NCBI RefSeq assembly: GCF_030144855.1
Contig: NC_082717.1
Location: 47,182,001 to 47,246,000 of the forward strand
Direction: 5' to 3'
From: Hypanus sabinus
Taxonomy: Eukaryota
Length of the DNA: 64,000 nt
The position numbers were made by a program, and so were the translations under genes. Numbering within the stretch: position 1 is the first letter of the stretch; each line of letters begins with the position of its first letter. The notes under the pieces were generated by a model, which had not been told where the DNA came from, did not search any database, and was given only the letters and a program-made list of their open reading frames with translations. Positions 1,918 through 56,915 of this stretch are shown here, in pieces.

Positions 1918-2593
1918 CTGGAAGAAAGTAAATAATGATCCTTAATTAAATAAAAGCACAATAAAGTGATGAGTTCAAAGAAATGACCAAAGATCAGATA
2001 ATAGACTAATTATGATGATGCTAGGCTTCTTCTAGTTTGTCCTGAAAGTTAGGATTACATAATTGCGTGTCTCAGTTTTAAACTTACTTTCCAAAGAACT
2101 TTGCAGGAACTATGAACTAATAATAACATTGTTAAGACAGGAAGGCATCCACATCTGATTAATAATGCAACAAAAATACTTCTCTTTAACCAATGAGATA
2201 TTCAAAAGTAACCAGAAGAACTAATGAGAGTGTATTATAATGGGTGAATTTAATTGTACATGATATGCAGAAGAAGAAAGGAAAAAATCTGGAGAACTAG
2301 GGTAGGAACAAGACACAAAAGACACAAAAGAAGAAAATTAAAACTGACTACATTCTCTTAGAGCAAATCATAAGTTGAAGGAATAAAACCTCATGCCTGT
2401 TTATTTTCAGGCCAAGAGAGGTTAATTCTGTCATTTACAATTTTCAAATCTGCTGACAGATGTGAAAAACACTCCTGTAAAATTATTACATTTAGTCTTA
2501 AATAACTGGCCATTGCCCCTTTCTGTGCATGAAATTATTTTAAAAATAAGGCAAGTCAAGTGAAGTTCATTGTTACTTAACTACATACACGTA

Positions 2594-2981
2594 CAGTTAA
2601 AGTCAAAAGTTTTCAGTTTTTCACAATTGCTGATATTTAATCCCAGAAAACATTTCCTGTCTTAGGTCAGTTAGGATCACTATTTTAAGAATGTGAAATG
2701 TCAGAATGATTTATTTCAGCTTTTATTTCTTTCATCACTTTCTCAGTGGGTCAGAAGTTTACATACACTTTGTTAGTATTTGGTAGCATTGACATAAATT
2801 GTTTAACTTGGGTCAAACGTTTCGGGTAGCCTTCCACAAGCTTTTCACAATAAGTTGCTGGAATTTTGTTCCATTCCTCCAGACAGAACTGGTGTAACTG
2901 AGTCAGGTTGGTAGGCCTCCTTGCTCGCACACGCTTTTTCAGTTCTGCCCACAAATTTTCTATTGGATTGAGGTCAGGACT
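2594..2981 (-). mobile_element. Sleeping Beauty/salmonid Tc1-like right end (IR/DR plus transposase C-terminal fragment), inverted left arm of a composite element
   Basis: TA|CAGTTAAAGTCAAAAGTTT terminus; inner DR CAGTGGGTCAGAAGTTTACATACACT; minus-strand peptide SPDLNPIENLWAELKKRVRARRPTNLTQLHQ...KLVEGYPKRLTQVKQF is the SB transposase C-terminus. Confidence 0.93.
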
Positions 2982-5900
2982 GAAATGGCAAATAATATGC
3001 ACCTTCGAAATAAAACTAGGGAAAAAGATAGCGAAGCCTTGAGCAAGAAAGCTGATGTTACAGTTATGGTGCCTTTGCATGCTGCTGGACCTGCACTACC
3101 TGATGATCTCAAGCGGCTTCATTTAGTACTTCTTACTGACATGACACAAGCGGTGCACTCTGCCCTGAAAAGAGAACTTGAAGATGCTTTGTCACCAGTG
3201 GAATGCTACCATGGAACAAATTATGTCTTATTACGAGTCGCACGATGAACGCATTTGTGAGGTTGAAGATGGCCTGAATGATTATAGTGACCGACCGGTG
3301 AGCACCGAAGCCACCATTGCAGCGTTGCAGAGCGAAAATGCATTTCTGAAGGGAAAGCTAGATGACCTCGAAAATCGGTCGCAGAGATCCAATATGAGAG
3401 TGGTCAGCATTCCTGAAAATTTGGAAGGTTCGGACCCTGTTAAATTCATAACCGAGTTTTTTGACGAAGTGCTGGGGACAAATTTCTTCCCAAGGTCTCT
3501 CGTACTTTCGCATGCTCACCGAGTTGGACCTAAACCATCCGGTGTCTCTGAAGCCAAGCAAACGAGACCAAGAACGTTTCTGGTTCTCTTTCACTTCTTT
3601 CAAGATAAGCAATGCATCATCAGTAGATGGCAGCAGGAGTTGTATTTCTGCGGGCATTGAGTACTTTTTCATGAAGATTTTAGTGCGGAGCTGGGGAAAA
3701 AACAAGCAGTGTTCAAGGAGGTGAAATCCCTACTTTAAGGGGAAGGGTTCGGTCTACTGTATCCTGGTAGGCCATTTAGAACAGAGATGTGGAAAAACTT
3801 TTTCACCCAGAGAGTGGTGGATATGTGGAATGCTCTGCCCCAGAAAGCAGTGAAGGCCAAGTCCCTGGATGCTTTCAAGAAAGTTAGATAGAGCTCTTAT
3901 AGATAGCAGGGTCAAAGGATACGGGGTACTGATTGTGTATGATCAGCCATGATCACAGTGAATGGCAGTGCTGGCTAGAAGGGCCGAATGGCCCACTCCT
4001 GCACCTACTGTCTATTGTCTGCCTGGCTCAGGGTCATCCATGAAGGTAAAAAGTATTATCTTGATATACCAGGGGCGGCTAAAGTATTTTACCATTCATG
4101 CTGGGGAGAAGAATGAGAAAAGCAATGACTTTTTTTAGGTTACTCATGCAGCATTGAAGGAGCCTCCCACCAAGGCAAACTGTTAATTTTCATAATTCAC
4201 TTCTTTGTTCATTTTTTCCAGTTTAATTTGTGGAACACGACCAGGTTGAACTGCTATACTGCAGAAACTGATTAACAAAAACTTCCAACCAGCAAAATGT
4301 AAGTATTTGGGATTTGCATCTCTGGCATTTAGTTTCCTAGTTTTTTTTTTGTTTTTAATGCTTTGCTTGATCTATGTTATCTTTAGCCTATATATATTAA
4401 AGGTAGAATAAGTGACTGTACAAATTTTATGGAGGGGAACCACCCTAGCTTAGATTGAAGGTTTGGTTGTATGGGCAATGCTTTGGAAGTTTTTTGTTTG
4501 GTAAAGCCTGCGATCATCCTCAGTTGGGGAGGTAGATTAAGGTTTCGGGGTTAATTGTTTTTTCTTGTTTGTGTAAAGGGGTGGGGGAGTGTTTTGGGGG
4601 ATTACCATGGCAGTTTATTCTTTTGTATGTTAGGATTGGCCAGACTTTCTTTTCATTGTGCGTTATTGTGTGCAGTTTGTGCCCTCGCACTGTTTTGGAT
4701 TGTGGGCCCTGTGTGTCTTTTGATCTGGTTAACATGAGTGCTGCTGACGGAGGCCACCCTGTGAGGTTTATTTCTTGGAATGTAAAGGGGCTCAATGGTC
4801 CTGTTAAAAGAGCTAAAGTTTTCTCTCATCTGAAACAATTAAAAGCAGATATACTATTTTTACAAGAGACACATTTAAGAGTGGAAGACCATAATAGACT
4901 CCGTAAAGCATGGATTAGTCAGGTTTTTCATTCCAGATTTAATAGTAGGTCCGGGGGGGGGGGGGGTGGCAATATTAATCACCAAAAGAATGCAGTTTAC
5001 ACCATCTGATGTAATCAATGACACTCATGGTCACTCTCTTATAGTCTCTGGATCTGGATCTCTTTTTCAGATACCTGTCATTTTCTGATTGGGACGATGT
5101 CCACTTTGCAAATAAGGTTTTGTCATTAATACCTAACCTGAATACACAGCAGCTAATCTTTTCAGGAGATTTGAACTGTGCTACTGACCCACTGCTTAAT
5201 AGGTCTAGCTTTAGGGGAACATCTTCTGGTATGGCAAAGGTCTTCTCGATGTTTATGCAACAAAATGCTTATATGGATCCTTGGAGATTTTTGAATCCAT
5301 CTGTTGGGCAATTCTCTTTCTTTTCTCTTGTTCACCACTCCTATTCCAGGCTAGACTATTTCTTTATAGATTGTTCCTTGATACCAATGATTAGACAAAT
5401 TGAGTACCCTGCTATAGTTATATCTGATCCCTCGCCCGTGAAACTGGACCTATGTTTTCCTTTAAACGTTAGAGAATGGCCTCTGTGGAGACTTAACTCC
5501 CTTTTGCTTTCCAATGAGAAATTTTGCAGTTATATAATCGGCTAACATTGACACATTTTTTGAGATTAACAAAACTGAATCAATATTGTACTCTTTACTT
5601 TGGGAAACTTTAAAAGCTTACTTGAGGGGTCAAATAATATCTTATACTTCACATGCCAATGAGGAGCGTAGGAAGGAAATGCAAGTGTTATTACAATCTA
5701 TTTTGCACCTGAATAGGCAATATTCTGAGGCACCCACTGCAGTATTATATAAAAGCCAGGCTGATTTGCAAGCGAAGTTTAATCTTCTATCTACAAACCT
5801 ATCAGAACAATTAATTCTTAAGACAGGTGGCCTCTATTATGAATATGGTGACAAGGCAAGCCGGCTTATGGCTCATCACTTGAAGCGTCAAGCTGCATCA

Positions 5901-8825
5901 CGACTTATTCCCCAGATAAGAGACACGCACCAAAACTTAACAAGCAATCCAAAAGAGATGAATAACATCTTTGCAACTTTTTATTCCTCTCTGAATACCT
6001 CAGAGTTTCCCTCAGATATAACAAATATGGAACATTTTTTAGATAATTTGGAAATACTAACTCTTGAACCAGAGCAAGTGGAGAACTAGATCAGGCTCTT
6101 GGGCAGGAAGAGATTAATAATGCCATTATAGCTATGCAGAGTGGTACATCCCCAGGCCCTGATGGTTATCCAATAGAATTTTATAAGAAATTTAAGGATA
6201 AGCTCATACTGGTCCTTCTAGAAGAGTTCCAGGAATCTTTGGAGAACGGTTCCTTACCCCCCCACTCTTTCACAGACATCTAGTTCACTTCTTCTGAAAA
6301 AGGACAAGGACACGACTCAATGTGGATCGTATCGCCCCATCTCACTTTTGAATGTGGATGTGAAAATTTTGGCTAAAGTACTTGTGTGCCATTTAGAACG
6401 CCCCTTCCCAAGATAATCTCAGATGATCAAACAGGTTTTATTAAAAATCACCATTCTTTTTTTGATATCTGTCGACTGGCTGATGTGGTTTATTCACCCA
6501 GTGAGTCTCTGAGTCCAGAGATTGTTATCTCCTTGGACGCGGAAAAGGCGTTCGATAGAATGGAGTGGGTATACTTGTTCAGTGTTTTGGAGAAACTTGG
6601 ACTTAGCAGAATATTTGTAGCCTGGGTTAAGCTATTATATCACTTGCCTTTAGCGTGTATACAGACGAATTATTTTCGATCTATTTCCCATTAACACGTG
6701 GCACTCGCCAAGGCTGCCCATTGTCCCCTCTTCTTTTTGCAATTGCAATTGAGCCTCTTCCTATTGCACTTAAGTCAACTACATTATTTCAAGGTGTTAG
6801 GAGAGGGACATGGAACACCGCGTATCCCTATATGCTGATGACCTCTTACTTTATGTTAGCGAATCTGTAGGTAGCAGTCCTGCTATTGTGTCATTAGTAG
6901 GTCAATTTGGAGCCTTCTCTGGCTATAAACTGAATCTTCAAAAAAGCAAATGCTTTCCCATTAATAACTTGGCCCTGCAGAATCTTTGCCGGTTCCTTTT
7001 TCTCAAGATGGTTTTGTATACCTAGGAATACACGTTACTCACTCTTTTACATCTCTGATTGAAGCTAACTACAGGCCTCAGGTCAGCCAAATGAAGGCTG
7101 ATTTTGAGAGATGGCGCAGTTTACCCCTTACTATAGCTGTGAGAATTCAATCAGTGAAAATAACTACACTTCCTAGATTTCTTTATTTGTTCCAGTGCTT
7201 GCCAGTTTTCTAATCTAAGTTATTTTTCAAATCAGTTGACCACACTATAACCTCCTTTATTTGGGAAAATAAGGTCCCTAGGGTTAATAAGCACACTCTC
7301 CAAAGGGGTTGTGACGTAGGTGGAATGGGCCTTCCTAGCTTTATTATTACTGGGCATCGAACATTCAAAAGGTATTATTTTGGCTTCACCAGCTAGATAT
7401 AAACTGGTGCCTGCCTGAGACACGGTCTTGCTACTCTTCATCTCTCCCACCTTTACTGTATTCTTCCTTGCCCTTGAAGTCCTCTCATTTCACATCTAAT
7501 CCAGTTGTGCTATCCACCTTCAAAATTTTTAATCAATTTCGCTGCCACTATAAACTCACATCAGCTTCAGTTTTGGGTCCCATTTATAGAAACCATCTAT
7601 TTCTTCCCTCCACACTCGATTCAGTTTTTAGACAATGGGCTTTGAACGGTCTTATGTGCATTAAGGATTTGTACACCGATAATATATTTGAAAGTTTTGA
7701 TAACCTGTGCAGTAAATATCGCCTTCCGCATAATCATTTTTTTAAAAATACCTGCAGATTTGCCACTTTGTCAAGGAAATATTTCCCTCTTTTCCTTATC
7801 TACCTCCTGTTATGTTGTGGGAAAAATTCACTCTTAGTTTTAATAATAAAGGGCTGATCTCTGTACTATACTTTCAGATGATGTCTTTGAGAGTTCAGAT
7901 CTAAACAAAACTAAGCCTAGGTGGGAGCATGACCTTGGTATGGATCTGGCTGAGGATATTGGGCAAAAGCATTGAATAGGGTTCATTTCTCATCATCATG
8001 TACTAGACTGGGGCTCATACAATTTAAAGTTTTACACAGGGTATATTTAAGTAAGGCCAGGCTTGCTGACATATATCCTGGGACAGATGCTGGCTGTGAT
8101 AGGTGTTCCTTCTCCCCAGCTGGTTTAGTGCATGCATTCTGGTCTAGCCCTCAGCTTGATGGTTATTGGGCACTGGTTTTTAAAATTATCAGTGAGCTTT
8201 TGGGGCTGATACTGAGACCTTGCCTGCTTATAGCTGTATTTGGTATGGCAGATGATGCTTTGGGTTTAAACGCAAACCAGTCGGATATCATTGCATTTAC
8301 ATCACTTTTGGCCCATAGGAGAATCTTGCTGGAATGGAAATCTGCCACTCCCCCATCTGCTGCTGGTTGGTTAGAGCACGTAATGTTTTTTCTGAAATTA
8401 GAAAAGATTAAATTCACTCTGAGGGAGTCTGTGAACAAGTTCTATTCGAAATGGGGACCTTTCTTGTCATATTTTGGGAGTCTTGAGGAATTACCTACTA
8501 ATTGAGGGTATTTGATTGTACTTGGGAAGTTGCCTCCCTTTTAACACGCATATGGTTTACCTCCCAGGGTGTTTGATGAACTGTAATATGAGTGTATTCT
8601 GGATCATCTGACATGTTGTGGATGTGTGTGGGCCTTCGTCTTGAAGTAGTGTGGGGATATGGCTGTGAAATGTCCGTACTTGTATTTGAGAAGTGTTCTA
8701 TTGTAAAAACATTAGCTACCATGGTATGCTCAGGGAGGTTGGGTGAGGGGAGCAAAATGGAGGAAAATGTAATCCATTATGTATTCTGTATTGTGTCATT
8801 CCTTCAATAAAAATATTCAAAAAAA
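2982..8825 (+). mobile_element. L1-clade LINE, near full length, 5'UTR missing, ORFs decayed
   Basis: ORF1 ~2985-4116 (coiled coil, LDDLENRSQRSNMRVVSIPE); ORF2 ~4734-8505 with APE endonuclease (ISWNVKGLN, FLQETH, GDLN, SRLDYFF), RT (SLDAEKAFDR, GTRQGCPLSPLLF, LYADD) and C-terminal CxxC...HxFW; AATAAA plus A-tail at 8806-8825; many frameshifts and stops. Confidence 0.95.
3766..4020 (+). mobile_element. CR1 LINE 3' fragment inserted in L1 ORF1
   Basis: CR1 3' end (...FFTQRVVDMWNALP..., TCTATTGTCT tail); removing it restores L1 ORF1 FGLLYP|AWLRVIHEGKKYY. Confidence 0.9.
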
Positions 8826-9101
8826 TGTTTGACCCAAGTTAAACAATTTAAAGGCAATGCTACCAAATACTAATAAAGTGTATGTAAACTTCTGACCCAC
8901 TGGGAAAGTGATGAAACAAATAAAAGCTGAAATAAATCATTCTCTCTACTATTATTCTGACATTTCATATTCTTAAAATAAAGTAGTGATCCTAACTGAC
9001 CTAAGACAGGGAATGTTTTCTACGATTAAATGTCAAGAATTGTGAAAAACTGAGTTTAAATGTTTCTGGCTAAGGTGTATGTAAACTTCTGACTTCAACT
9101 G
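8826..9101 (+). mobile_element. Sleeping Beauty-like right IR/DR (right arm of composite element)
   Basis: Encodes LTQVKQFKGNATKY* (SB C-terminus), then inner DR and outer DR GTGTATGTAAACTTCTGACTTCAACTG|TA; reverse complement of 2594-2820 apart from small indels and substitutions. Confidence 0.95.
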
Positions 9102-11240
9102 TATATAACATATATAACCATATAATGTATATACAAACAAGGCAACGTTTCTTCCAACCAGGGTGTAAAGCACAGTAGCACATGTTAACTTATGAAGGGT
9201 ATGGATACAATCTACTGATGAATCACACATAAATAACAAAGTAAAGTGCATTAATACTAAATACTGTAAGGTACATAACAGATTAATCAGTGCCACTTCA
9301 AATACAAAGCATCAATCAGGGAGTTCAAAAGCCTAATGCCCTGGGGGAAGAAACTGTTTCCCATCCTAACTGTTCGTGTTTTTATGCATCTTAGTCTTCT
9401 GCTTGATAGTAGAAAAAAAGTCAAAGGGGATGCTGGGTGGATGAGTGGGATCATTAATAATACTAAGAGCCCTGCATGTGCAATGCTCCTGATAAATATC
9501 CCTGATAATTGGTAGGGAGACCCCTATGGTCACATCTGTTCTCACAGTCCTTTGTAGGGAACTTCTGGTCCAATGCTCGACTGCTCCCATACCAGATGGA
9601 GATGCAACTTGTCAGGAAGCTGTTGATAGTGCTCTAGTAAAACACAATTAAGATGAGCAGGGAGAGAGCTTCACTTTCTTTGATCTTCGTATGAAGTAGA
9701 GCCGCTGCTGTGCCTTCATGTTCAGGGAGGTGATATTAAAGGACTAGGTGAGGTCATCTGTGATGTGAACTCCCAGGAACTTGCTGCTCTTAACTCTACA
9801 GAGCAGTCATGTATTCACAGAGGGGAATGGTTTGTCTGCGCCTTCCTGATGTCCACAATGATTTCCTTTCTCTTCTCCTCATTCAAGCTTAGGTTGTTCT
9901 TCTCAAAACAATCCATCAGCTGCTCCACTTCCTCTCTATACTCCACCTCAACATCATTCTCATTATCATCTGCAAACTTGATGTTACAGTTTGAGCTGTC
10001 ACACGTCAGCAGTGTGAACAGCAGTGGACTGAGCACACAGTTTTGGGGAGCCCTTGTGCTTAACTTAATGGGACGAGAGACATTGCTACCCACACGACTG
10101 ACTGTGGCCTTACTGTTAAGATGTCCAGTATCCAATTGCAGAGGGAGGTGTTGAGACCCAGCGAGGACAGTTTCCCCACCAGTTTCTGGGGTATGATGGT
10201 ATTGAATGCCAAAGTGAAGTCTACAAACAGCAGTCTGGCATATGAGACCCCGTTTTCCAGCTGGGACAGGACAGAGTGGAGGCATTGCATCATGCATCAT
10301 CAGTAGATCGATTCGAGCGATAACCTAACTAGAAAGGGACCGGTGTAGCCGGGAGTAAGGCCTTAATGTGCTCCCCGACCAGTCGCTCAAAGCATTTCAT
10401 AATGGCTGATGTCAATCCCATTGGATGATAGTCATTTAGGCAGGTTACTGTCACCTTCTTTGGCACTGTAATGATGATTTGGCACCTTGAAGATTGAGGG
10501 GACAATGGATAGTTCCAGAGAAATGAATCTATCTGATTGGCACCTACATCAGCTGAGCTGCACAGTCTTTCAGCAATATAACAACTATTTGCATAGCATT
10601 TACTTTGTATTAGGTATTATAAGTAAGTTGGAACAGGTATATCCAGTATTATTTAGGATCAGTTAGTCAAGCGTTTGTCTTAGTATATAGTATATATTTC
10701 ACCTTTCTATACATATAAAACACTTAAGAAACGTAGGTATTTCAATAATTAAGCCACTGTGTTGCTTAGTAATAATTGTAGCTTTCCTCAGGGCAGGGTC
10801 TTTCACATGCTCCATTATTCTCACTTTATCCTCTACAATTGTTCCGATCGTTGACCGACTGTAGCCTAATGCTTTTCCAGTGTGTGGTCAAGAGACTGCT
10901 TTATAGGTACCTGGTATGCTACTGTAAACCAGGTCTAGCGTATTTTCACCTCTGGAAGCAAAATCAACATGCTGGTAGAATTTAAGCAGGACGTCTTTAG
11001 ATTTGCATGGTTAAAATCACCAGCAATAATGAAAATACTTCTGGGGTGTTTGGTTTGAAAGTCACTGATGGTGCTGTTGAGCTCTCGCAGTTTCTCACTG
11101 GCACTGGATGGGTGGGGGGGGAATATATATACAACTATCAATACAATTCTAGTGAACTCCCTCAATATATAAAATGGTCTGCACTTCACAAAAATAAATT
11201 CAATCATCGGTTAACAATGGGACACCACCGCTAAAGTGTT
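9102..11240 (-). mobile_element. Rex1/Babar LINE, decayed (its extreme 3' tail lies at ~2551-2593, on the other side of the SB/L1 insertion)
   Basis: RT motifs [38 protein letters not shown]; endonuclease VKCRPFYILREF...IIAGDFNHANLK. Confidence 0.85.
10573..10880. mobile_element. Tigger/pogo-like DNA transposon fragment interrupting the Rex1 element
   Basis: Sequence ACAACTATTTGCATAGCATTTACTTTGTATTAGGTATTATAAGTAA resembles Tigger subterminal sequence and breaks Rex1 collinearity. Confidence 0.5.
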
Positions 11241-12276: not shown

Positions 12277-12850
12277 AATAAGAATCTGAATTCGGCCATT
12301 TAGCTCATCAAGTCTGCTCCACCATTCTATCATGGCTGATTTATTATCTGCCTCAACCACATTCTCCTGCCTTCTTCCAGTAACCTTTGACACACTTACT
12401 AATCAAGAACCTATCAACCTCTGCTTTAAATATACCCAATAACTTGGCCTCCACAGCCATCCATGGCAATGAATTCCACAAATTCACCACTCTCTGGCTA
12501 AAGAAATTCCCTTTCATCTCTGTATTAAATTAACATCCTTGTATACTGAGGCTGTGCACTCTGGTCCTAGACTTTCCCACACAGGAAACAACTTTTCTGT
12601 GTCCATTCTTTCTCGGCCTTTTCCCCCTTTCTTCCAAATTCCAGCAAGTACATTCTCATTAACCTTCTCTGTCCTAGTACAGGCCTTCTCAACTGTTAAC
12701 TCTTTCATTCCCAGGACCATTCTCAAGAGTTTGAATGTTGTAGGTCTGTACTCTGGACACTCTCCTATGCCAGTACATTCTCTCTTAGACTGGGTACCAA
12801 AAACTGCTCACCATATTCCAAGTGCAGTCTGAAAAATGCCTTATAAAGCC
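12277..12850 (-). mobile_element. CR1 LINE 3' fragment
   Basis: Reverse complement of the CR1 ORF2 end and 3'UTR seen elsewhere in the window. Confidence 0.8.
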
Positions 12851-22439: not shown

Positions 22440-25400
22440 ACATCAGAGTATGAATCAGAATCAGGTTTATTAACACGGGCATGTGTCATGAAATTTGTTA
22501 ACTTAGCAGCAGCAGTTCTATGTAATACATAATATAGAACAAGGAAAGAAAACAACAAATAAATCAATTACAGCATACATATGAAGAATAGGTTAAAATC
22601 ATTCAAAAACAGAAATAATATAACAGTGTTCATGAGATCAATGTCCGTTTAGGAATTGGATGGCAGAGGGAAGAAGCTGTTCCTGAATTGCTGAGTGTGT
22701 GCCTTCAGGCTTCTGTACCTTCTACCTGATCATAACAGTGAGAAAAAGGCATGCCCTGGATGCTGGAGGTCCTTAATAATGGACGCTGCCTTTCTGAGAC
22801 ACCACTCCCTGAAGATGTCCTGGGTACTTTGTAGGCTACTACCCAAGATGGAGCAGACTGAATTTACAACCTTCTGCAGCTTCTTTCAGTCCTGTGCAGT
22901 AGCCCAACCCCCCATACCAGACAGTGATGCAGCCTGTCAGAATGCATTCCACGGTACATCTATAGAGGTTTTTGAGTGTTTTTGTTGACATATCAAATCT
23001 CTTCAAACTCCTAATGAGGTATAGACACTGTCAATAGACAATAGACAATAGACAATAGGTGCAGAAGTAGACCATTTGGCCCCTCCAGTCTGCACTGCCA
23101 TTCTGAGATCATGGCTGATCATTCACTATCAATACCCAGTCCCTGCCTTGTCCCCATATCCCTTGATTCCCCTATCCATCAGATATCTATCCAGCTCCTT
23201 CTTGAAAGCATCCAGAGAATTGGCCTCCACCGTCTTCCGAGGCAGTGCATTCCACACCTCCACAACTCTCTGGGAGAAGAAGCTCTTCCTCAACTCTGTT
23301 TTAAATAACTGACCTCTTATTCTCAATCCATGCCCTCTGGTACTGGACTCTCCCAACATCTGGAACATATTTCCTGCCTCAATCCTATCAAATCCTTTAA
23401 TTATCTTAAACGTTTCAATCAGATCCCCTCTCAATCTCCTCAATTCCAGCGTGTACAAGCCCAATCTCTCCAATCTCTCTGCGTAAGACAGCCCTGCCAT
23501 CCCAGCCATCCCAGGAATCAACCTAGTGAATCTACGCTGCACTTCCTCAATTGCCAGAATGTCCTTCCTTAAACCTGGAGACCAAAACTGTACACAATAT
23601 TCCAGGTGTGGTCTCACCAGGGCCCTGTACAAATGCAAAAGAACATCCTTGCTCTTGTATTCAATTCCCCTTGTAACAAAGGCCAACATTCCATTTGCCC
23701 TCTTCACTGCCTGTTGCACTTGCTCATTCACCTTCATTGACTGGTGAACTAGGACTCCTAGGTCTCTTTGCATTTCTCCCTTACCTAACTCGACACCGTT
23801 CAGGCAATACTCTGCCCTCTTGTTCCTGCTTCCAAAATGGATAACTTCACATTTATTCACATTGAATGACATCTGCCAAGTATCTGCCCACTCACTCAGC
23901 CTATCCAAGTCTCCCTGTATTCTCCTAACGTCCTCTTCGCATGTCACACTGCCACCCAGTTTAGTATCGTCAGCAAACTTGCTGATACAGTTTTCAATGC
24001 CCTCATCTAAATCATTGACATAAATCGTAAAGAGCTGTGGTCCCAATACAGAGCCCTGTGGTACCCCACTAGTCACCTCCAGCCAGTCTGAGAAACACCC
24101 ATTCACTGCTACCCTTTGCTTTCTATCTGCCAACCAGTTTTCTATCCATGTTGAAACCCTGCCCCCAATGCCATGAGCTCTGATTTTACTCACCAATCTC
24201 CTATGTGGCACCTTATCGAATGCCTTCTGAAAATCTAGGTACACAACATCTACTGGCTTACCCTCGTCTAACATCCTTGTTACACCCTCAAAAAACTCCA
24301 ACAGATTAGTCAAGCATGATTTGCCCTTGGTAAATCCATGCTGGCTCGGCCTAATCCTATTTCTGCCATCTAGATGTGCCACTATTTCGTCCTTAATAAT
24401 GGACTCAAGCATCTTCCCCACGACTGACGTTAGGCTAACAGGGCAATAGTTCTCCGTTTTCTCCTTCCCTCCCTTCTTGAAAAGTGGGACAACATTAGCC
24501 ACTCTCCAATCTTCAGGAACTGATCCTGAATCTAAGGAACATTGGAAAATGATTACCAATGCATCCGCAATTTCCTGAGCCACCTCTTTTAGAACCCTCG
24601 GATGCAGACCATCTGGACCCGGGGATTTATTAGCCTTCAGTCCTACCAGTCTACTCATCACAGTTTCTTTCCTAATGTCAATCTGTCTCAATTCCTTTGA
24701 TATCTTATGACCTTGGCCCATCCATACATCTGGGAGATTGCTTGTGTCCTCCCTGGTGAAGACAGATCTAAAGAATGCATTAAATTCTGTTGCCATTTCC
24801 CTGTTTCCCATAACAATTTCTCCCAATTCATTCTTCAAGGGGCCAACATTGTTCTTAACTATCTTCTTTCTCTTCACATAACTAAAAAAGCTTTTGCTAT
24901 CCCCTTTTATATTCCTGGCTAGACTGAGCTCATACCTGATTTTTTCTCTCCGTATTGTTTTTTTTAGTTAAGATCTGCTGTTCCTTAAAACTTTCCCAAT
25001 CATCTGTATTCCCACTCATCTTAGCCCTGTCATACTTCTTTTTCTTTAATGCTATACAATCTCTGACTTCCTTTGTCAACCACTGTGGCCCCTTCCCCCT
25101 CTTTGAATCCTTCCTTCTCATTGGAATGAACTGCATTTGCATCTTTTGTATTATGCCCAAGAATATCTGCCACTGCTGATCCACTGTCTTTCCTGCCAGG
25201 GCATCCACCCATTTAACTTTGGCCAGCTCATCCCTCATGGCTCCATAGTCTCCTTTATTTAATTGCAACACTGACACCTCTGATCTGCCCCTATCCCTCT
25301 CAAATTGTAGATAAAAACTTATCATGTTATGATCACTACTTCCTAATGGCTCCTTTACTTCAAGATCACTTATCAATTCCTGTTCATTACACATCACCAA

Positions 25401-55699: not shown

Positions 55700-56915
55700 A
55701 TGGTGTGGGGAAAGTAGATGTTAAGTCTACATGCAAAGATGGGAGCCAAAAAGTTGAGCATTTGGGGATTAATGTTCTGGGTTGTGTCTATTTTAATGCA
55801 AATGTAGGTAAGGCACATTACCTTAGGTGACAGCATGAATCTGCACGTGGAATTATGATATTGTAGCCATTAGTGAGACTTAGTTGTAAGACTTGCAGCT
55901 CAAAGTTTCAGGCATGATAGTGGAGGAGGTATTGCTCATCAGGGAAATGTCATGGTAATGCTCAGGCAGGACAGACTAGAGGGCTCATCTGGAAGGAAGG
56001 CAAAAAATGGAATTATAAACCGGTTAGCCTGACTTCAGTGGTTGACAGGAGACAGTGGGAATAAAGGGGTCCTTGTCCGCATAACTGCTGGTGACTAGTG
56101 GAGTTCCATAGAGGTCAGTGTTGGGACTGCTTCTTTTCACATTATATGTCAATGATTTGGATGATGGAATGGATTCCTTTGTGGCAAGTTTGTACACAAT
56201 ACAAAGGTAGGTGGAAAGGCAGGTAGTGTTGAGAAAGCAGGAAGTCTGCAGAAAGGCTTAAACAAATTAGGAGAATGGGCAAAGAAGTGGCAGATGGATA
56301 CCATGTAAGGAAGACTAGAAGTGTAGGCATTCTAAATGGGGAGCAAATTCAGAAATCAGAGGTCAAAGGGACTTTGAATTCCTCATGCAGGATTCCATAA
56401 AGGTTAATTTGCAGGTTAACTCGGTAGTAAGGAAGGCAATTACAAAGGCTGTGGCTGTAATAAAACCCAGCTTCCTGTGGGATCAATAAAGTATGTCTGT
56501 CATTCGTTTTGAGAGGACTAGAATATATAAAAGTAAGGATATGATGTTGAGGCTGAGGAGCATTTGTTGAGGCCTGTGCTCACTGAAGTTTGGACATGGA
56601 GAGGATGTTTTCAACCATGAGTGAACCTAGAACAACAGCATCAGAATAGAAGGGCATCCCTTTAGAACAGAGATGAACATTTTTTTTTAGCCAGTGGGTG
56701 GTGAATCTGGAATTTATTGCCACAGATGGCAGTGGAATCCAAGTCATTGTGCATATTTAAAGTAGAGGTTGCTTGGTTCTTGATTCTTAGGGTGTTAAGG
56801 GTTGGGGACAAGGGCATGAGAACAGGGTTGGGAGAAAAAAATGATCAGCCATGATTGAATGGTGGAGCAGAATCAATGAGTCAAAGGGCCTAATTCTGGT
56901 CCTATATCTTGTGGT
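55700..56915 (+). mobile_element. Decayed, internally deleted CR1
   Basis: Endonuclease, RT and 3'UTR pieces homologous to 28420-29700. Confidence 0.7.

Follow-up and report, generated by a model that had tools for sequence, protein, structure and literature searches.

How does a retrotransposon come to lie between two inverted right ends of a DNA transposon, and could it have moved as that transposon's cargo? The question is raised by a composite of an L1-clade long interspersed element (LINE) and a Tc1 transposon of the Sleeping Beauty (SB) kind, located in a 64,000-nucleotide stretch of the Hypanus sabinus genome (NC_082717.1, positions 47,182,001 to 47,246,000; hereafter the window, within which coordinates are counted from the first base). 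The answer that we favor, and consider highly probable, is an ordinary nested insertion, in which the L1 entered a Tc1 element with right ends on both sides (a right/right element) by target-primed reverse transcription (TPRT) and with deletion of target sequence.

A Tc1/L1 composite with two right ends

The composite consists of an inverted Tc1/SB-like 3′ end, a 5.84-kb L1 and a forward Tc1/SB-like 3′ end, enclosed by two TA dinucleotides. Its features are as follows.

2592–9103: Tc1/L1 composite unit, TA-flanked, ~6.5 kb, as read from the sequence
2592–2593: left copy of the TA target-site duplication, read from the sequence; paralogues of the flanking repeat carry a single TA here
2594–2977, minus strand: left arm, an inverted Tc1/SB-like 3′ end with an outer direct repeat (DR) remnant (2594–2612), the inner DR (~2750–2771) and the last ~60 transposase codons
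2978–2978: one ambiguous base, g, between Tc1 and the L1 5′ end; it agrees with ggcttt, the way in which canonical Tc1 continues, and disagrees with aaaatg of the right/right junction
2979–8822, plus strand: L1-clade LINE, decayed, with the ATG of open reading frame (ORF) 1 at 2985, endonuclease (EN) at ~4760–4970, reverse transcriptase (RT) at ~6400–6660 and an A-tail at 8819–8825
8823–9101, plus strand: right arm, a forward Tc1/SB-like 3′ end with KRLTQVKQ codons, stop codon, inner DR (8874–8896), outer DR (9071–9093) and terminal CAACTG
9102–9103: right copy of the TA target-site duplication, read from the sequence; a single TA in the same paralogues

Both arms are 3′ (right) ends of a Tc1 element of the IR/DR (inverted repeat/direct repeat) group. 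Read on the minus strand, the left arm passes from the transposase tail by way of the stop codon to both DRs, inner then outer, and on to the terminal CAGT; the right arm begins within the last ~15 transposase codons and keeps both DRs. The outer termini of the composite, cagttaaagtc and gacttcaactg, are of the CAGT... type of this group. Positions 2613–2822 pair with 8823–9053 in complementary blocks of 91–96%, the inter-arm identity being 85% across 231 columns when gaps are counted, and the arms resemble each other at 88–93%, with indels private to each. The transposase C-terminus encoded on the minus strand of the left arm (64 aa) matches SB100X (PDB 5CR4, chain residues 161–224) with E = 2.2e-32; a DDE_3 match (E = 6.5e-6) falls under Pfam's cut-off. 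Only the tail of a transposase is present in the composite. The arm pairing, together with the transposase tail, stop codon and DRs in both arms, confirms the unit that the first-pass annotation had placed here, with two inverted right ends around an L1. Its term "sandwich" is a misfit, as each arm (384 bp on the left, 279 bp on the right) is a single right IR/DR with a transposase tail and neither is a whole element. The arms had also been described as asymmetric, the left one longer by ~160 bp, and we find that it extends ~156 bp deeper into the element.

The left arm ends internally at position 2977, at GAGGTCAG, which is also the inner boundary of the inverted arm in the right/right subfamily described below; the offset from its stop region to this boundary is 197–198 nt, within 1 nt of that in other right/right copies. 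Its inner DR is intact, its outer DR carries a 29-bp internal deletion, and the arm has lost a further 15 bp and 5 bp. The 29-bp loss, which the first-pass annotation had recognized, is private to the composite: among the 39 other matches in the genome, 38 begin within 3 nt of the breakpoint, and the sole exception is L055 (query 8–116, 87%). On the right, the Tc1 sequence adjoining the L1 tail reads aaacgtttgaccc in other copies, and here its CpG has decayed to TG. Differences from the family majority amount to 23 of 384 sites (6.0%) in the left arm and 7 of 275 (2.5%) in the right, a marginal asymmetry. We also observed that 31-mers of the left arm turn up in public sequencing runs from about ten organisms, which would fit horizontal transfer; no public sequencing run contains the whole stretch, and the top share, 0.20, is due to Tc1 words found in many organisms.

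The L1 copy is dead, its longest ORF being 177 aa. An APE-type endonuclease is recognized by Pfam (PF03372, E = 1.3e-7), the reverse transcriptase match (PF00078, E = 1.2e-5) lies under Pfam's cut-off, and human LINE-1 ORF2p is the top PDB match of two ORF pieces. The copy had been called almost complete, with ORF1, ORF2 and poly(A). The L1 and its A-tail are indeed present, but the element is heavily decayed and 5′-truncated by ~141 bp: nine paralogues extend ~141 bp further upstream and then diverge from each other. Its 3′ end is complete, since paralogues share the end motif followed by 6–8 A and this copy has 7, the last three of which are possibly Tc1-derived. We found no target-site duplication around the L1 at either junction, in agreement with the first-pass annotation, and the L1 takes the place of ~0.9 kb of its Tc1 host. 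The L1 family gave more than 7,000 first-look candidates genome-wide. One further repeat lies within the copy:

3767–4018: nested 252-bp dispersed repeat, SINE-like (that is, resembling a short interspersed element) or a LINE tail, missing from most L1 paralogues

This repeat, of ~250 bp and with the end ...gaatggcccactcctgc..., also occurs in the window at 23043–23306, 12442–12530 and 56658–56745, and in many of the retrieved loci.

Ages were taken from pairwise distances alone, and no L1 or Tc1 consensus was used. The terminal-branch divergence of the L1 is 4.6%, that of the left arm 6.0% and that of the right arm 2.8%, to be compared with 3.6–5.0% for other L1 copies and 2.9–6.5% for other Tc1 copies. 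By this measure the two families appear to be of similar age, their ranges overlapping.

The insertion site and the L1-free right/right subfamily

The composite is flanked on both sides by one dispersed repeat.

2545–2591, minus strand: host LINE-like repeat to the left of the insertion, its last ~45 bp (3′ edge); paralogues align from ~2543–2563 through the reconstructed empty site
9104–10100, minus strand: continuation of the host LINE-like repeat on the right side of the insertion; an RT-like ORF occupies 9818–10324, minus strand

We reconstructed the empty site by joining the two flanks across one TA, and aligned it to 19 paralogues of the flank repeat, a family whose right-flank part gave more than 2,700 first-look candidates genome-wide. 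The reconstruction was colinear through the join, and free of indels, with 17 of these paralogues. The repeat family reaches its edge ~45 bp left of the insertion, and the RT-like ORF is found ~0.7–1.2 kb to the right, on the minus strand, which identifies the host as the 3′ part of a LINE-like element. When 14 ORF pieces of the flank repeat were submitted to Pfam, a single weak EN match was returned, and the RT was suggested by the Atlas feature search only. The first-pass annotation had seen a Rex1 3′ untranslated region (UTR) running on across the two TAs and had taken this as a sign of a single insertion. The continuity holds in the 17 paralogues. The name Rex1 is putative, its support being the RT-like ORF, and we refer to the host as a LINE-like repeat. 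Further Tc1 3′ ends numbered zero in the rest of the window and zero in ~190 kb of loci not chosen for Tc1. Since the empty site is colinear with a single TA and the window has no other Tc1 3′ end, the two right ends arrived together, in a single Tc1-type insertion.

We retrieved 12 other Tc1 3′ ends from the genome and classified them: eight belonged to ordinary left/right copies, one was truncated, and three belonged to right/right elements without an L1. The eight left/right copies (L054:167–1638 and seven similar loci) are a 1.47-kb deletion derivative that lacks the 5′ UTR and the start codon, and most copies of this Tc1 family are therefore non-autonomous. The L1-free right/right elements are TA-flanked, 1.5–1.6 kb long and located at different loci:

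L060:1451–3064
L063:133–1638
L005:198–1784

In all three, the element's last ~430 bp come first, as their reverse complement, and lead through 12 nt of the 5′ UTR into the body from about codon 21. The diagnostic right/right junction, identical in the three, reads GAGGTCAG, then AAAATGATGTCA, then AGTCTGG. It was spanned in 40 of the 40 scored genomic matches, and a 27-mer across it, with up to three mismatches allowed, had 95 matches genome-wide, against 0 for the reversed control. The corresponding count for a stop-region 27-mer was 607. Because each right/right element carries two stop regions, these counts put right/right elements at roughly 19% of the Tc1 family, which agrees with the three among 12 in the sample. 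A spacer-less palindrome centre (ATTGAGGTCAG and CTGACCTCAAT at a gap of 0–20) had 0 matches in the genome, and a perfect-palindrome precursor is therefore without evidence.

Several arrangements within the subfamily were observed in passing. Inverted stop-region pairs occur 257 and 440 bp apart (C18:86210692/86210949 and C18:3463530/3463970, respectively), and these probably represent short versions of the right/right element that arose by internal deletion. Six right/right junctions fall inside 0.63 Mb of C35 (65.87–66.50 Mb) and four more lie on C2515, and some right/right copies have probably multiplied through segmental duplication rather than transposition. On C25, a junction copy at 8653681 (minus strand) lies 9.7 kb from a forward right end at 8663403 (plus strand); the latter is either a second element or part of a right/right copy split by a large insertion.

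Relative to L060, the composite lacks the 12-nt 5′ UTR remnant, the element body and the first ~156 bp of the other arm, ~0.9 kb in total. The diagnostic junction is absent and the L1 starts at its expected place, so that the junction was either deleted on insertion or never there. An L1-free right/right derivative with the spacing of the composite (a gap of 200–230 between exact 12-mers) had 0 matches in the genome. We also compared the "added" with the "original" arms of right/right copies for fixed differences by which the composite could be oriented, and none was usable.

Each of the two Tc1/L1 junctions was found once in the 4.04-Gb genome. All other matches span either the Tc1 half or the L1 half, never both, and no second locus with the internal junctions of the composite was found among the scored candidates.

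How the composite may have arisen

The first-pass annotation had left two origins open: either an L1 had inserted, with a deletion, into a palindromic derivative of SB, or a DNA transposon had captured an L1 and moved it as cargo. The results support the former and provide no positive evidence for the latter. In the sequence of events that we propose, the left IR/DR of a Tc1 element would have been replaced by an inverted copy of the element's last ~430 bp, giving rise to the right/right subfamily. In a single transposition, one such SB-like, non-autonomous element would then have entered a TA in the 3′ part of the LINE-like repeat, and the L1 would have retrotransposed into the element later. 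The first-strand nick would have been made ~280 bp from the right end, in a T-rich stretch (bottom strand GTTT^CGG), with the A-tail priming there; reverse transcription would have halted ~141 nt before the L1 5′ end, and the inner edge of the left arm would have been the exact upstream point to which the end of the cDNA was joined. The joining would have cost ~0.9 kb, comprising the unique body and the first ~156 bp of the other arm, and would have produced no target duplication. Subsequent decay would account for the 29 bp missing from the outer DR, the broken L1 reading frames and the 252-bp repeat inserted into the L1.

That the L1 5′ junction coincides with the palindrome boundary may be a trace left by hairpin (fold-back) processing. 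Once the right arm had broken, the upstream strand, after resection, would fold back, its terminal ~156 nt pairing with the inner left arm and the body forming the loop. A structure-specific nuclease that cuts the stem–loop junction would then generate a 3′ end at the arm boundary, available for joining to the cDNA. We infer both the order of events in situ and this cause of the coincidence.

Several points weigh against nested insertion in place. Plain nesting does not predict that the L1 5′ junction should fall within 1 nt of the arm boundary; the chance of hitting this exact position is ~0.2% (about 3 in 1,340 positions, with breakpoints taken as uniform over ~1.3 kb), a figure calculated post hoc. 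A target deletion of 0.9 kb is at the large end of the range for L1 insertions. The composite's putative membership of the right/right subfamily comes down to two characters, the arm length and the boundary. The genome searches score the best 40 candidates, among which a junction-spanning match would rank first, and "single-copy" is accordingly to be read as a strong indication. Finally, nesting in situ is indistinguishable from a history in which the L1 nested at a donor site and the composite was then cut and pasted once.

The position of the 5′ junction also speaks for a different course, in which the long inverted repeat of the right/right host formed a hairpin or cruciform and broke, and repair of the break captured L1 cDNA in an EN-independent or break-assisted manner. 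A junction exactly on the palindrome boundary, the lack of a target duplication and the loss of sequence on both sides of the loop would all be in keeping with it, and C18 has the short derivatives, their stop regions 257 and 440 bp from each other, which suggest that the internal region is prone to deletion. However, EN-independent L1 insertions are often 3′-truncated, whereas this L1 has a complete 3′ end and an A-tail normal for its family, at a T-rich site that fits EN nicking; nor was a spacer-less palindrome centre found in the genome. Capture at a break appears unlikely.

Slightly less likely again, in our estimate, is that the L1 became nested in a right/right Tc1 element elsewhere and that transposase moved the 6.5-kb composite, by its two right ends, into the current TA. 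The composite is bounded by termini of the intact type and by one TA duplication; its right arm has both DRs, and the private 29-bp deletion in the left arm could postdate the move. Right/right ends were evidently mobile in this genome, with ~95 copies, the similar divergence of L1 and Tc1 means that transposase was possibly still active, and cut-and-paste transposition need leave no second copy. Against this, neither junction has a second copy, while right/right paralogues free of L1 exist in ~95 copies, the combination that the first-pass annotation had associated with simple nested insertion. SB transposition declines as cargo size rises. The move would be an extra step beyond what the data require, and chance nesting is to be expected with more than 7,000 L1 candidates and several hundred Tc1 copies.

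We give very little credence to a pair of independent, oppositely oriented Tc1 insertions that were later truncated and then bridged when an L1 inserted with a large deletion, or to an assembly artefact; either would explain the bare arrangement and nothing more. The outer flanks meet at a single TA in the repeat family, which already contradicts two insertions, Tc1 density is low both in the window and in the ~190 kb of other loci, and arms 88–93% alike with private indels are unlike the product of a collapsed or chimeric assembly.

Related systems and implications

Nested insertion by TPRT has parallels in known systems. Human L1 insertions with target-site deletion have reportedly been recovered in cultured cells. 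The L1 described here resembles them in its complete, A-tailed 3′ end at a T-rich nick, its 5′ truncation, the lack of a duplication and the loss of target sequence. It differs in that its target is a transposon with long inverted repeats and in that its upstream breakpoint lies within 1 nt of the repeat edge. Engineered SB substrates with identical ends, among them an SB "sandwich" vector, are said to have been built; as in these, two inverted identical IR/DR ends bound a multi-kb segment between TAs. The sandwich vector comprises two complete elements, whereas each arm of the composite is one right IR/DR with a transposase tail, and mobilization of the L1 is hypothetical.

Caenorhabditis elegans Tc7 and deletion derivatives resembling miniature inverted-repeat transposable elements (MITEs) are non-autonomous Tc1/mariner elements with long or rearranged inverted repeats. 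Like them, the right/right elements are without transposase, keep the terminal binding sites, are mobilized in trans and insert at TA. Unlike them, they have an inverted repeat of ~430 bp that comes from their own 3′ end and includes coding sequence for the transposase C-terminus, and a single junction is common to all copies. We found no description of natural right/right SB-like families in the literature searched. The right/right subfamily is a variant of the non-autonomous Tc1 derivatives, and that it is so abundant comes as a mild surprise, given that the transpositional enhancer of SB (HDR) is located in the left IR (PMC5224488) and Tc1/mariner transposases favor one end (PMC4505599).

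For the biology of these elements, spread of L1 by a DNA transposon is unsupported, and the locus is best read as routine nesting of transposable elements; if Tc1 transposase had in fact mobilized the composite once, this would provide a natural example of cut-and-paste transport of a LINE. The L1 breakpoint at the edge of a 430-bp inverted repeat is a hint that secondary structure of the target shapes how L1 insertions are resolved. The right/right derivative, with ~95 copies, makes up about a fifth of its family, and natural right/right ends thus seem to have been adequate substrates for transposition in vivo.

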